Shown: positions 10,382 through 46,300 of the stretch, piece after piece
Layout of the letters: every line of letters begins with the position of its first letter
Position numbering within the stretch: the first letter of the stretch is position 1
Assembly: GCF_040938485.1 (NCBI RefSeq)
Contig: NW_027271309.1
Span: 434,001-498,000 of the forward strand
Length of the DNA stretch: 64,000 bases
DNA from: Diadema antillarum
Taxonomy: Eukaryota
Reading direction: 5' to 3'
Made by a program: the position numbers and the translations under genes
Notes under the pieces: generated by a model
The model's input: only the letters and a program-made list of their open reading frames with translations
What the model was told of the DNA's origin: nothing
Database searches by the model: none

Positions 10382-13300
10382 CTGCAATGAAACAAGCAAG
10401 CATCTTACTTCAGTCTCAAAGCTGTAAGAACTTTTGCACCTCTTCACATAATGACTCCCCATCCCCACCCCATTAACAACTCTTCCCAGCATGACCTTCA
10501 CATATCGCAATCTTGGCTGCAATTGCTCTTGCAAACCTCGCTGCACTTTTATCAACTGCATGCTTGAGGTATCACTGATTTAGCAACGTGAATACGAAGA
10601 CCCTTCAGTCTTTAACACTACACAATGCTTTCACAATCTATCCGTGCTTTGCAATAGGCATTTACTTGATCCTGATACCTGCATATCTCATACAAACACA
10701 AGAGAATCATCATTATCAAATTTGTCTTTCACTGTCAAGGTTTAAAAACTCAAAAGCACAGTAGTTGAAATAAATCTCTAATCTGTTCCTGTTGTAAGTC
10801 ATATATGTTTATCTTTCCATGGACAATGTTTCTGAAGTAACACAACCAGGAGTCTAGAGAAATCCTAAGTATCATCTTCAAAAACACCGTACACTACTTT
10901 CGGAGAGCGCATACAATCACATCTTATCGTAATGGTAACTCATACCTTCTAACCACATAGTTCATACATTCACGCGTACAAAATACCCCTGACTTTGTTG
11001 ATTGTGACAAGTTCTAAACAGAGTTACCCACGTGCTGATCCATCCACACTGATTTCCAAATCTCTGGAAAAGTACTAATAAGATACAACTCTAAATCCAA
11101 AGAGAGCTGCCATCTCAGTAAGCTAAGACTGTCTGATGATGGAAGCTCCTTTTTGCCACTTAAGCCCCGGTCACACAGCGCTTTACGGTTTAATCACGGC
11201 CAAAACCTGTCTAAAAGTGGTCTCCCGTGAAGCAGACGATGTTATTCGCGTTGATGTTGAGTTTAAGACGAGCTACGGTCCATTTACAGACATGGCAGGA
11301 TGCGGGGAAAAACCGGAACGGCGTCAGACGCGGGGAAAAACCGGAACGGCGTCAGACACGGTAAAAAGTTTTGAACTGCTCAAAATTTTACTCCGCGGAC
11401 AACCACGGGTGGCACACATGGTAAAGACGTGCAACTCACATGAAACACACGTGATAATTCGTGTTCCAGCAGTGATTAAAACTTGGGGAGACGCGGTACG
11501 ACGCGAAAATTTAGCAGGCAGAGCACGGTCATCTGACGCATGTTACGCGTTGGTATTACTGGAAATAGCATGTGTTTAGCGGCTTATCACTGACAAATTG
11601 ATTTTTCCGCGTACATACACGTGGCTGGACGTGGTTAGCAGTGCTTAGGGAGTGCTTCAGCAGTGGAACAGCCGCCAACGGCCATACCCCGTACAAAGCA
11701 CGGCCAAACCAAAATTGAACAAAAAATTACCACTTACAACCACGTCCACCAGATTTTCATAACTTTTTGTACGTGATTTAGACGTGGAGTGCTGTGTGAC
11801 CGGGGTATAAGGTTTATACAATCTGTTGCATAAGAGCACTGGGACACTTCATTTCTACTTATTGCCCAAACTCCAAGTTACAAGAATACATTTTAGGTAC
11901 GATGTCATATCTCGGGAATGTAGAGAGTTCATCAAATATAGTGGTTTATCATGATGACAGCTTAGGGTGCATCAACCCTGCACGAGAGCATACATATCTT
12001 TGGTTCTTATTTTTCATTTTGTTCATTTTTTCTTCATTATGTTCACAGTTTTTTTTTTCTTCGTTTTGTCCCCAACCGACACTCACCATGGACTCCCCCT
12101 CCTTGTCCCGTTTCCGTTTTCGCTCCTTCACGCCGCGAGGTTTATCATCCCAGCTTTTCCTCTCGCTCTGCTTCTGCCGAACTAAAGGTAAAGCAGACAC
12201 ACAGGTGACGACATTAAAGTTTGGGCTAAAAGAGCGTGTAAAGCCAGGGAGTAAAATTTTTTATGCCGAGGCAACAGTTTTAAATCAATTCAGTATCCAA
12301 TATACAAAGAAACTAATGTAAATGATTATGGATTTCACTTTGATAGTACAGGTAAAGTCAATACAAGACCTCCAAATTTGCAGCATGTCTTACTTCACAT
12401 CTACAAAGCAAATAAACAAACATAAAATATTCAAGACACATTTATCAGAAGCTCTCACTTCTCACTGCTTTACTCACTGGGATCTATAGTGAAGTCTCCA
12501 TGAGGAAAAATATATCTAGAGTATGGAACATTTAGAAACAAGGTGCAGAACTATACTTGCTTTCCTTAAATGACATGATACTAATTCACAACAAATTTTC
12601 CGCTATACTGACAAAATATCTGGGCACATCTGGACTCACATTTTCTCTCAATGTCTTCGTCATCAAGTAGAAGTGACACGACCTCCTTGGGCTTGAGCTG
12701 GTCTAACTTGAAGTTTCCACCAGTTATAACCATTCGCTGAATCTGAAAAACAAAAAGACACACGACGTCCACTTAACATTTGTTGTTTTTTTTAAAGTGA
12801 AGTGAGTATCTGAGATCACAGCTGCGATTCGGCAATTTTTATTCCTGTAAATGTAATTATCAAATCATTTTGAAAATGATTCATCTGCACAAATATTCAT
12901 TTCGAACAAGTATCCCTGCCCTGATGCCTCAAAGATTAAGTTCCAAAATGTTATTACAGTAAGCTTCTATGCAAAACCCCTGTAAGAAATGGCATCAAAA
13001 CTTGATGTGATTACTGACGATTATTTCACTCTCTTTGGAGATGGGGGTCGCATTCTCAACCCGAGACATGCCAATTATCACATCAGTCTGCCAATCTCAA
13101 AATTGCATGGTCAGCCAGTTTGAATTTGCGAGGGCCCTCCCCCCACTAAACACCACTCACGCCCAATCCCACATGTGGGACGGGGCTAATGAATTGGATT
13201 TCCTTTTGCCCTGATTCAGACCACTCGGCCTGCAAGACCAGACAAATTGAAAAACTTTGCCCAAAATTTGCCTGATGTGTTGCTGTACCCAATATCAGTG

Positions 13301-43300: not shown

Positions 43301-46300
43301 CGATCATCGTAGTAAGAACGTAGCAAGCACTTGGTAGTCGTAACTGCAGCGTACTTAGAGCGTTCTAACATCGTACTGTGTCCAGATCGGCTCAGGTTTT
43401 ACCCGATCCTTCCCGACCTGAGAAAATTGTCAAATCGTAGCGAGAACGGCATAGTGGAACGGGGGCTTTAAAGATCCTGCTTCATTCATTCATTGCAAAG
43501 AGCAGGGTGTTTAACCCGGTGAAGTGGTCCCACCTCACATCCAACTTGATCCCATGGAAGACCAGCTTAGAGTAGCTGAATATGGGCTATCCAGCCATCT
43601 TCTCAGATGGAAATGAACAAACAAAACAAAACATCTCCATGTTCGACATATATGAGAATATTTCAGGAAAAAATGACAGAGTCAATCATACACAGTTGAA
43701 AGCATACTGGAGTATGAAGAGGTCAAGCTTCATGATCTTTACTTTGGCAAGCTTTCAAAGACCACCCATCAATGATTGAGCAGGGCCTCTTTCAAACAGG
43801 TACTTGCAATAGCTGTAAGTCACGTCACTGCTATTCACTTTGGCAACAATGTAGATGCTCACAGCTGATCAGTTATTGAATAGCAGTTGCCATGGTAGTG
43901 GCGATCTCGATTACATGAGATTTTTGGTGAACAATTCATCAGAAAAAAAAAAATCACTTCAAAAACAAAAGCAATAATCAAGTGGAATGAAATCTGTACC
44001 AAGCTCATATCACTCCCGACAAATTTGTCAGACTTCTGAATGAAAGACATCAAGAAGTTATGATCATACTGCGGAAGGGTCTATAGATTACTATCATTTC
44101 CGGGGGCATGAAATCCAAGATAACTCGATAGATATGTTTTCCTCCATGAATGTCTTTGCATGACAAAGGCATGGGATTCAGTGGTTTGTTTCCTATAGAG
44201 AGCTGCTTCAATGTGATCTTGATAATATATGGGAAATTGACCGGGAATACTCTTAATCATCTAAACCCCTTCTGAAACCAAAGAACAATCCTCAAAAGAT
44301 CCTTCCGTATCAGTAAGGACAGACCTGTTGTCAAATACAGAATATAAAAGTGCACTGGACTACAAAATGATGCAAAATCTCAATCCTCATACCCATCAAA
44401 TATCAATGCTTGAGAAAGAGACCTAAAAAGGGAGTGTCTTGATAAGATATGTGACTAAGTGTGACAGATACTCATCAACCATCAACACTGCCATCTCACA
44501 CAGGATACTGATGGAAAATTTTGTATCATTATTATTATTTTCTTTTGTGCTTTGATATCTATTTCCAACTCTTTATTGAAGTGGATTACAAGCCTTCACA
44601 GAAGATTTCAGGAGAATTAATTCGGATTCCAATAATCAGTCTCATCTCAATTGGGGAAGAAAGTCGAGGTTTCCTAGTCTTCTTAAATCAAGAACTGACA
44701 ATAAGCAGTTACTGTTCGGCGTATTTTCCCCCTATTATTTTGGGGGCAAAATCAGCCTCATGTTTGTAATCAAATTCTAAAAGAATATCAGTCTTCAGAG
44801 TGAGACAGTCAAATCTTAAAGCTAAAACATAATACTTGGCTGGACCTTCACATTCATCTTCCATCATTTGGAATTTGCTTGCTACATATTGTATAGATTT
44901 AACAAGAAACTTGTGTGGCTGGTGCAATTTGCCAGGATATCGAGTTGTTTGGTAGCATCTTAAGATAGACAAAAAAGATGGTATACCAACTTTTATTCTG
45001 GAAGCGCCCTCCCCTGTTCAGTAGTGAGTGTGTAGAATGCTGCTAAGTTCGTGATGATTGAATCATGTCCAAGCAGTAGTACTGAATCGCACATAGAACA
45101 AACTGCATGCAATTCACTCATGCGAGCAATGGATACAACTATGGCCCAATATATTGTAATGTAAAAACACTCAATAGCAACCACGACTGGGTACGCTTTA
45201 AAACTGTCGTACTTCTGGTGAACCTTTTTGGTTAATATTTGACATTTTCGTCATCACCCAAGGAGCTGCCATGGCTTATTGGACAAAACCAAAGTCTCTC
45301 AATCTCTTGGGTCCCTGGTTAAGTCCACGACCAGTAGCACTTGTGTCCATGGGCAGGGTGCTGTATCCCCACTGCCTAGTCCTTTGGAGGGAACTTAAAT
45401 CTGTCAGGCCTATGACAGTTTGTGGATAACTATACAAGTGCTCTTCCTTAGTGGCCTAGCAAAATAAATCTAAACACAAGCAAACAAACAGGATTTACCA
45501 ATAATGTTTTTGTCTAGTTATTTTTTTTTCCCACCCGTAATCAAAGCAGACATAAATTTGAATTTGTTTCCTACCTCACTCTTCTCTCTTGCCCTTTCCA
45601 AGATGTGCTCCTCAATGGTGCCCTTGCAGATGAGCCGGTAGACGGTCACCTGCTTGGTTTGGCCCAGCCGGTGGGCACGGTCCATGGCCTGCTGGTCCAC
45701 AGTGGGGTTCCAGTCACTGTCGTAGAAGATGACCGTGTCAGCTGCAGTTAGGTTGATCCCCAGACCGCCGGCTCGGGTACTCAGCAGGAAAACAAAGATG
45801 TCGGACCTAGCACATTGAGGAAAACGGAGGAAAATGTCACCGATTGTTATCTTGCCATAACATAGAATGAGGCAATTTACAATCATGAGGCATTATGCAC
45901 AGCCATTGTCGCAAATGCAATGCCCAATATTCCTAGAGTAGGGTTGAAAGGCCCAAAAGTATTTCATATCATCATTCAATGACTCAAAAGGCCACTGTCA
46001 TTAAAACTTAGCATCAACTCTGAGCTTCAGTATGCAAATGATGAAATGAAACTCACCTTGTCTGGAAGCCAGCCACCATGTCACGGCGGTCTGAGATCTT
46101 GGACGAGCCATCCAGCCTCATGTAGGTATGCTTGCGGTGCCACATGAACTCCTACCAAAACATAGAAACACACGCTCAGTTGTTACGAGTAGTTTGGTGA
46201 ACGCATGATTTTGCCTAATCTTCATAACTTGAACATGAGCATGATATTTGCAGTGTCTCAAAAACATATCCAAGCAGTAGAAATATTAACAACTTCATCA

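Follow-up and report, generated by a model that had tools for sequence, protein, structure and literature searches.

Conserved non-coding elements in a giant INO80 intron of the sea urchin Diadema antillarum, with Delta as a candidate target

The gene for the chromatin remodeller INO80 of the sea urchin Diadema antillarum contains an intron of 32,832 bp, within which short non-coding sequences are found in the same order as in the orthologous intron of Strongylocentrotus purpuratus. We describe here this intron, its conserved elements and the genes around it, among which are a ChaC (gamma-glutamylcyclotransferase) gene and a gene for a Delta-type Notch ligand. The sequence under study (the window) is 64,000 nucleotides long and represents positions 434,001-498,000 of contig NW_027271309.1, called C421 below, in the 1.75-Gb D. 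antillarum assembly; C421:214-414 kb was read in addition to the window. Positions that carry no contig name are those of the window.

INO80 and its giant 3' introns

INO80 is encoded on the minus strand of the window. Its exons match INO80 proteins from many animals, as expected of a gene for this ATPase, of which DBINO, a split SNF2 domain and Helicase_C are characteristic, and the annotated D. antillarum INO80 (P0410) maps on them with 91-100% identity. Exons were searched one by one, with database proteins rather than a joined spliced protein used for the mapping. The exon that ends in REKSE, which belongs to the helicase C-terminal domain, occupies 45575-45808 on the minus strand (tblastn with the INO80 proteins P0004, P0190 and P0410); its last codons, GAG AAG AGT GAG, end at 45575 and are followed by GTAGG, with the GT donor at 45574-45573. 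At the other side, the acceptor TTTTCAG, with its AG at 12744-12743, is followed from 12742 by ATT CAG CGA ATG, the beginning of the minus-strand exon IQRMVITGG (12640-12742), after which a GTGAGT donor is found. These exact donor and acceptor positions, read from the letters, define a GT..AG intron on the minus strand at 12743-45574, and thus confirm the length of 32,832 bp that an earlier note on this DNA had given for the intron between EKSE and IQRMV.

The remaining INO80 introns within the window are small (∼0.2-3.3 kb). Beyond the left edge of the window, proteins of D. antillarum and D. setosum locate an exon at C421:411,368-411,610 and a long last exon, rich in Ser, Thr and Pro, at C421:374,496-375,683, so that the 3' end of the gene is 60 kb left of the window. 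At least two further giant introns of ∼33-36 kb each lie in this part of the gene. The earlier picture of a single outsized intron among small ones therefore holds inside the window and breaks down outside it: the 3' half of INO80 has at least three giant introns, and the EKSE/IQRMV intron comes first among them. The gene spans 139 kb in D. setosum and 103 kb in Lytechinus variegatus. In S. purpuratus (locus L051), 23 compact 5' introns of 0.3-1.7 kb are followed by introns of 16.7 kb and 18.5 kb and by a last span of ∼34 kb. The intron orthologous to EKSE/IQRMV measures 16.7 kb in S. purpuratus, at least 10 kb in Lytechinus pictus, 5.2 kb in Patiria and 296 bp in Branchiostoma belcheri, and the last INO80 intron is large in Patiria (17 kb) and B. 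belcheri (28 kb).

The giant intron seems to have left its mark on gene annotation. The NCBI model of L. pictus INO80 (1312 amino acids) reads through the EKSE donor into the intron, ending in EKSEVRINLKYFIVVH (L050:37358-37390 of the L. pictus locus), and an older L. pictus entry named 'mucin-17-like' holds the INO80 tail exons. The L. pictus gene thus seems to have been split by annotation exactly at this intron. Within the window itself, one run of N is present at 53632-53800.

Conserved cores in the EKSE/IQRMV intron

About 12 GC-richer, non-repetitive and non-coding blocks had been singled out in this intron by the earlier note, blocks 1 to 6 at about 13050-13330, 14000-14400, 16680-16880, 18540-18760, 25300-25640 and 26490-26720, and blocks 7 to 12 at about 28070-28900, 29640-30170, 32430-32850, 33520-33860, 34640-35420 and 38900-39300. 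Their GC content is indeed higher (43-51%, pooled 48.2%, versus 38.4% in the rest of the intron), and 11 of the 12 are single-copy in the genome. Whole-intron genome searches were swamped by two young transposons and the blocks were searched separately instead. Blocks 1, 2, 7, 8 and 12 matched only themselves and contig C596, the presumed other haplotype (nearly every locus has a second copy, ∼94-100% identical, on another contig); blocks 3, 4 and 6 were single-copy in the genome search, public runs show single-copy depth over blocks 9 and 10, and block 11 is single-copy apart from a ∼50-bp low-complexity tail (35320-35386). Block 5 does not fit the description, as a repeat fragment within it (25372-25497) gave 729 first-look candidates, the scored copies being 88-95% identical. 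The non-coding character of the blocks stands: Pfam had no match in ten block open reading frames (ORFs), and the 198-amino-acid ORF of block 7 found no relative among 5.8 billion proteins, a blank that says little.

The Diadema intron was compared with the orthologous S. purpuratus intron by sensitive blastn, the reversed intron serving as control. Eight collinear non-coding matches with E < 1e-3 were found, 26-152 bp long and 66-100% identical, whereas the reversed intron gave no match below E = 0.08; the chance that eight items fall in one given order is 1 in 40,320. Core 1, in block 1 (13074-13203), is 71% identical over 133 bp to L051:44041-44164 and includes the conserved runs CACATGTGGGA, GGAAATCCAATT and CTGATGTGATAAT. 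Core 2 (14951-15039; 71% over 91 bp to L051:41589-41678) is collinear with the others and lies outside the blocks. Core 3, in block 3 (16656-16803; 66% over 152 bp to L051:40730-40869), has the conserved runs TTGTGATTAAT and GATCAGTTATG, and core 4, in block 4 (18545-18651; 77% over 108 bp to L051:40083-40188, E = 5e-14), has ACACGAAATTGAAAC and GCAATTAGC. Core 5, in block 7 (28209-28286), is collinear and 70.5% identical over 78 bp to L051:38132-38204 (E = 8e-5, intron to intron). The strongest match of this intron is core 6, in block 8 (29638-29753; 80.5% over 118 bp to L051:36504-36620, E = 5e-20); the same block holds core 7 (29965-29990), which is collinear and identical at 26 of 26 positions to L051:36466-36491. 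Core 8, in block 9 (32636-32746; 69% over 113 bp to L051:32892-32992), could be aligned three ways with L. pictus (L050:44400-44570), and several of its ATTAA(T) cores are invariant in the three species. A ninth, weak core in block 12 (39016-39061) has pairwise E values of 0.14-0.63; its S. purpuratus and L. pictus matches land at positions orthologous to each other, and TGACCATCTGC...AACTGACCT is invariant in all three species. Cores 1, 3, 4, 5, 6 and 9 are single-copy, and core 8 has single-copy depth. In S. purpuratus the counterparts of the nine cores occupy AAGJ06000005.1:35,362,011-35,375,781, the first being at 35,362,011-35,362,134 and the last at 35,375,729-35,375,781.

Seven of the eight matches thus fall inside blocks, namely blocks 1, 3, 4, 7, 8 (two matches) and 9. 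The cross-species alignment that the earlier note had called for hence yields a conserved core in six of the 12 blocks, with block 12 as a weak seventh that has three-species support, and leaves five (blocks 2, 5, 6, 10 and 11) in which no conservation with S. purpuratus was found. Two cores, those of blocks 9 and 12, are also conserved in L. pictus, and the conserved part is in each case only 26-152 bp of the block. The outcomes that the earlier note had named as damaging to its proposal, a lack of conservation or blocks that prove multicopy, are not what was seen, with conserved cores present and all blocks but one single-copy.

The blocks had also been described as rich in TAAT, E-box, Fox and K50 motifs. 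This survives for TAAT, and there inside the conserved cores only: over 819 aligned columns, 13 conserved TAAT/ATTA cores were counted versus 2.8 ± 1.6 expected, and none of 2000 column shuffles reached 13. E-boxes were not enriched among the same columns. At the level of whole blocks, E-box and TAATCC counts are modestly above those of the rest of the intron and Fox, Sox and Tcf counts are below them.

It could be argued that the GC-rich blocks are simply ordinary old intron lying between AT-rich younger insertions, that their matches are neutral remnants or chance, and that the intron became large by transposon accumulation. The five blocks with no detectable conservation would fit such a view, as would an equal CpG observed/expected ratio in the blocks and in the rest of the intron and the contribution of young transposons and short interspersed nuclear elements (SINEs) to the twofold size difference from S. 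purpuratus. Divergence from a close relative is uniform, too: contigs of this relative (∼5.7% diverged) span 28,001-34,000 of the window, and the substitution rate is 5.3-6.0% whether or not a piece contains blocks, block 7 being at 4.3%. Because of this uniformity, constraint at the scale of the blocks is invisible at short range. The two lineages of the longer comparison, Diadema and Strongylocentrotus, separated ∼200 million years ago or more, a distance at which neutral intron DNA is no longer alignable, and ordinary INO80 introns are indeed unalignable between them. Eight matches in perfect collinearity against none in the reversed control, two cores kept in a third species and an EKSE/IQRMV intron that is giant in three echinoids all speak against neutral remnants. 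For the cores this reading is disfavoured, and as a whole we give it only a slim chance.

Another possibility is that the cores are parts of unannotated transcripts (a long non-coding RNA, the precursor of a microRNA or other small RNA, or rare alternative exons) and act as RNA. Long introns commonly host non-coding RNAs, and an unannotated non-coding RNA is one of the options named by the authors who described the Tel element in an intron of Drosophila Ino80 (PMC9659042). However, no Rfam family reached the gathering score anywhere in the window, and no annotated exon of D. antillarum or D. setosum maps in the intron. In tblastx the cores matched in several frames and on both strands with no dominant frame, and they are therefore not coding; their alignments carry indels of 1-8 bp, and conservation peaks at TAAT-type protein-binding cores. 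An action as RNA thus appears improbable.

Between the cores, the intron has received recent insertions. A young transposon of 1.3 kb (20319-21638) has at least 37 genomic copies of 98-99% identity; it is absent from C596, is therefore insertion-polymorphic, and is probably still active. A second, of 1.7 kb (41776-43470), has at least 38 genomic copies of 96-99% identity. The CpG observed/expected ratio is ∼1.2-1.3 in young transposon sequence, versus depleted surroundings. A high-copy repeat insertion with approximate limits 30401-31000, whose word depth reaches thousands of times the single-copy level, is skipped by the contig of the close relative, and a SINE-like high-copy repeat at 31622-31840, of very high word depth and with six copies in 231 kb of neighbouring sequence, is missing both there and in a contig from a different D. 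antillarum run. These absences indicate that the repeats at ∼30.4-31.0 and 31.62-31.84 kb are recent and that the latter is segregating. Young insertions account for part of the twofold difference in intron size. A local screen against the 231 kb of neighbouring sequence marked 2.6% as repeats, too little sequence being available there for this figure to inform.

Two further sequences were noticed in the small introns to the right. A ∼700-bp repeat has two copies in small INO80 introns (46345-47076 and 56446-57101), with relatives of 65-80% identity immediately behind the EKSE exon of L. pictus (L050:37392-37823) and in an urchin contig from ENA (L046). The segment 50312-50670 matches L051:49777-50466 out of collinear order, including a 69-bp run that is 94% identical, and is probably a shared mobile or small-RNA-like element.

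Over the whole locus, D. antillarum and S. purpuratus share a collinear chain of 19 exons and up to 24 non-coding segments, one of which (C421:223.8 kb) is probably spurious. Thirteen of these segments lie in the last INO80 intron, three at 4-7 kb of the window and eight to nine in the EKSE/IQRMV intron. The small 5' INO80 introns have no conserved non-coding segment in the chain and do not align at this distance. Elements of the last intron (C421:375,700-411,400) include one of 576 bp and 70.7% identity (C421:376,382-376,923), one of 354 bp and 69.8% (C421:382,257-382,602) and one of 396 bp and 69.7% (C421:392,827-393,197). Upstream of ChaC, in the space between Delta and ChaC, two elements are collinear with L. 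pictus, at C421:295,222-295,354 (70% over 138 bp) and C421:302,766-302,998 (72% over 236 bp, E = 9e-35); they also serve as a sensitivity check of the alignment method. An array of conserved elements thus extends through INO80 and the intergenic space, its depth being limited to the echinoids.

One non-exonic match to the last INO80 intron of Patiria (63%, E = 8e-12) was considered as a regulatory element and rejected. It is a hairpin that resembles a miniature inverted-repeat transposable element (MITE), present in two copies at L043:6959-7163 and L043:7600-7777 (C421:400,959-401,777) and matched by the MITE-derived MIR807 model below the gathering score; it looks like a MITE common to echinoderm classes rather than a conserved regulatory element.

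Delta, ChaC and INO80 on one contig

Genome scans with the DSL and MNNL families found both domains at C421:226-231 kb on the plus strand and at the mirrored position on C596. The gene to which they belong extends over C421:226-238 kb on the plus strand (MNNL 72.9 bits, DSL 68.8 bits) and continues into EGF exons. By-eye estimation from the ORFs gives ∼8-9 EGF repeats, and in the translation of the last exon these run straight into a hydrophobic transmembrane segment, LVIYVAFGFLVISLVIILIIVVY, which is followed by a tail. Among solved proteins, the DSL exon has its best relatives in DLL1, fly Delta and DLL4, with the Jagged proteins ranking lower. The gene therefore fits the description of a Delta-type ligand, which has MNNL/C2 and DSL domains, a moderate number of EGF repeats and one transmembrane segment, and no Jagged-type cysteine-rich domain. 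The sole other gene of the genome with both MNNL and DSL, on contig C869, is closest to Jagged/Serrate. In a scan that took the homeobox as its only transcription factor family, none of the 150 scored candidates was on C421 or C596.

Between Delta and INO80 lies the ChaC gene, on the plus strand at C421:305,916-313,966 (L034:1916-2392 and L034:9434-9966), with an exon 100% identical to an NCBI D. antillarum protein. The order along C421 is accordingly Delta (plus, 226-238 kb), ChaC (plus, 306-314 kb) and INO80 (minus, from 374.5 kb), and it is the same on C596. In L. pictus, ChaC (plus) and INO80 (minus) are ∼150 kb apart on one chromosome. Vertebrate CHAC1 ('Botch') is said to antagonise Notch maturation, and Delta and ChaC may thus be linked by function in addition to regulation.

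The earlier note had placed a plus-strand Delta gene to the left of this DNA and had staked its proposal on a developmental gene near the 3' end of INO80. A Delta-type gene is present on the same contig and on the expected strand, but at 209-241 kb from the intron and not just to its left.

Similar neighbourhoods are known from other animals. The human genes DLL4, CHAC1 and INO80 presumably follow the order and orientation Delta (plus), ChaC (plus), INO80 (minus) seen here. Dll4, Chac1 and Ino80 are neighbours in the mouse (PMC3874025), DLL4, CHAC1 and INO80 are located at human 15q15 (PMC5325341), and in Drosophila ∼55 kb separate intron 8 of Ino80 from the end of Dl, CG43203 lying in the interval (PMC9659042). 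These papers bear out what the earlier note had stated, namely that INO80 adjoins DLL4 in human, with CHAC1 between, and Delta in fly; together with our data they place the synteny expected of a genomic regulatory block in D. antillarum, mouse, human and fly. In Patella, Patiria, Saccoglossus and B. belcheri, neither Delta nor ChaC was found in the 10 kb flanking INO80, a stretch too short to decide the matter. The main text of one survey of ancient microsynteny (PMC3514665) contains no mention of INO80, Delta, Dll or Notch, and a literature search that did not extend to the supplementary lists of two such surveys found no paper on INO80-Delta microsynteny, on a regulatory block there or on these elements.

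A candidate regulatory block

Taken together, the cores are non-coding and single-copy, and their alignments suggest purifying selection and clustered transcription factor sites, as would be expected of developmental enhancers. According to the model that we propose, some nine short single-copy non-coding elements (26-152 bp), scattered between lineage-specific transposon insertions, would have been kept in order by purifying selection since the split of Diadema and Strongylocentrotus. They would be cis-regulatory modules, either enhancers or silencers, bound by transcription factors at homeodomain-type TAAT cores. Delta is the best candidate for their target, because it is the sole developmental regulator identified in the block and because Delta and INO80 are neighbours in urchin, mammals and fly; INO80 and ChaC would then be bystanders, their linkage to Delta locked by the embedded Delta enhancers. 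That the elements have regulatory activity is, judging from their sequence, probable. The assignment of Delta as their target is a more tentative step, to which we would give somewhat less than an even chance. The overall proposal, of conserved cis-regulatory elements in an INO80 intron with Delta as candidate target and INO80 and ChaC as bystanders, is the one towards which we lean, with guarded confidence.

Such a pattern is what a genomic regulatory block with bystander genes would be expected to show. In well known blocks of this kind, the limb enhancer ZRS of SHH lies in an intron of LMBR1 and enhancers of PAX6 lie in ELP4. As in such blocks, a developmental regulator (Delta) has been kept beside housekeeping genes (ChaC and INO80) over very long evolutionary distances, and the conserved elements cluster in the neighbour's large introns, its other introns being small and containing none. 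The urchin locus differs from them in that its elements are conserved, as far as tested, among echinoids only, the gene order being much older, and in that Delta is here a predicted target.

Several observations weigh against this proposal. The 3' end of Delta is 209-241 kb from the intron, with ChaC between, which is far for published sea-urchin cis-regulatory modules. The elements of the last INO80 intron, outside the window, are denser and longer than those of the EKSE/IQRMV intron. Nearly half of the blocks (2, 5, 6, 10 and 11) have no conserved core, the E-box, Fox and K50 motifs show neither specific conservation nor enrichment, and neither the substitution rate against the close relative nor the identity between haplotypes (94% to ∼100% in the blocks, as in the rest of the intron, these being coarse identities from search tables) sets the blocks apart. 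Beyond the echinoids, the comparison with Patiria, Saccoglossus and amphioxus gave exon matches only, the cores not rising above reversed-sequence noise (the Saccoglossus INO80 locus contains 7.9 kb of N and its model has no Helicase_C). In Patella, INO80 is compact and the EKSE/IQRMV intron is absent; no neighbour was found there within 10 kb, which makes this species uninformative on protostome synteny. Since neither the elements nor the giant 3' introns are seen beyond echinoids, the word 'ancient', which the earlier note had applied to the block, fits its gene order and not its elements.

The elements could also serve INO80 itself or ChaC, as intragenic enhancers or in the control of 3' ends and isoforms, with the linkage to Delta incidental or kept for some other reason. 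They do lie inside INO80, whose giant introns are confined to the 3' half of the gene; models of INO80 disagree about its 3' end in D. antillarum (1561 and 1942 amino acids) and in L. pictus (the 1312-amino-acid read-through), and ChaC has conserved upstream elements of its own in common with L. pictus. The shorter INO80 models, however, look like annotation artefacts, and genes for broadly expressed chromatin remodellers rarely hold conserved arrays rich in homeodomain sites. Experiments in other animals also argue against a role in INO80 or ChaC. When a T-cell enhancer transgene was inserted near Dll4, Chac1 and Ino80 in the mouse, Dll4 was raised ∼100-fold and no neighbour changed comparably (PMC3874025), an indirect hint in favour of Delta as the target. 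In Drosophila, intron 8 of Ino80 holds the conserved non-coding element Tel, the deletion of which produced a phenotype and left Ino80 splicing and level unaltered, and its authors propose that it is a regulatory element (PMC9659042). We therefore consider control of INO80 or ChaC rather unlikely.

Tel resembles the urchin cores in being conserved non-coding sequence in a large Ino80 intron, and it is situated a few tens of kilobases from Delta. Unlike what would be predicted for the urchin cores, its phenotype concerns telomere elongation and not Notch; moreover, the fly intron has nested genes, and sequence similarity between the two is not expected. Another comparison is the S. purpuratus delta module R11 (Revilla-i-Domingo et al. 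2004, as cited in PMC1087472 and PMC8527612), which, according to the citing papers, drives localised delta expression and was likewise found as a small patch of interspecific sequence conservation, in the delta genomic locus. The urchin elements described here are more than 200 kb from delta and inside another gene. In this they differ from R11 itself, which reportedly lies some kilobases downstream of delta.

With the proposal of conserved Delta-directed elements in mind, one may speculate further that Delta enhancers near ChaC and within the 3' introns of INO80 have held Delta and INO80 together since the bilaterian ancestor, the echinoid cores being the turned-over occupants of this space. 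This wider model is doubtful, although not far-fetched. If it is true, part of the regulation of Delta and DLL4 in other animals, vertebrates included, should reside inside INO80. The linkage of Delta and INO80 has been checked here in an echinoderm and is supported for mammals and Drosophila by published work, and it can in any case be regarded as a candidate regulatory block of bilaterians.

Delta is a key Notch ligand in the endomesoderm and neurogenic networks of sea urchins, with known control elements near the gene. The elements mapped here are deeply conserved, lie more than 200 kb from Delta and have known S. purpuratus coordinates, and as candidates they could be tested directly for the delta inputs that are missing. 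Should the link to Delta be true, it would explain the odd gene structure of INO80, an essential chromatin remodeller, and would point searches for DLL4 and Dl enhancers in other animals to the introns of INO80.

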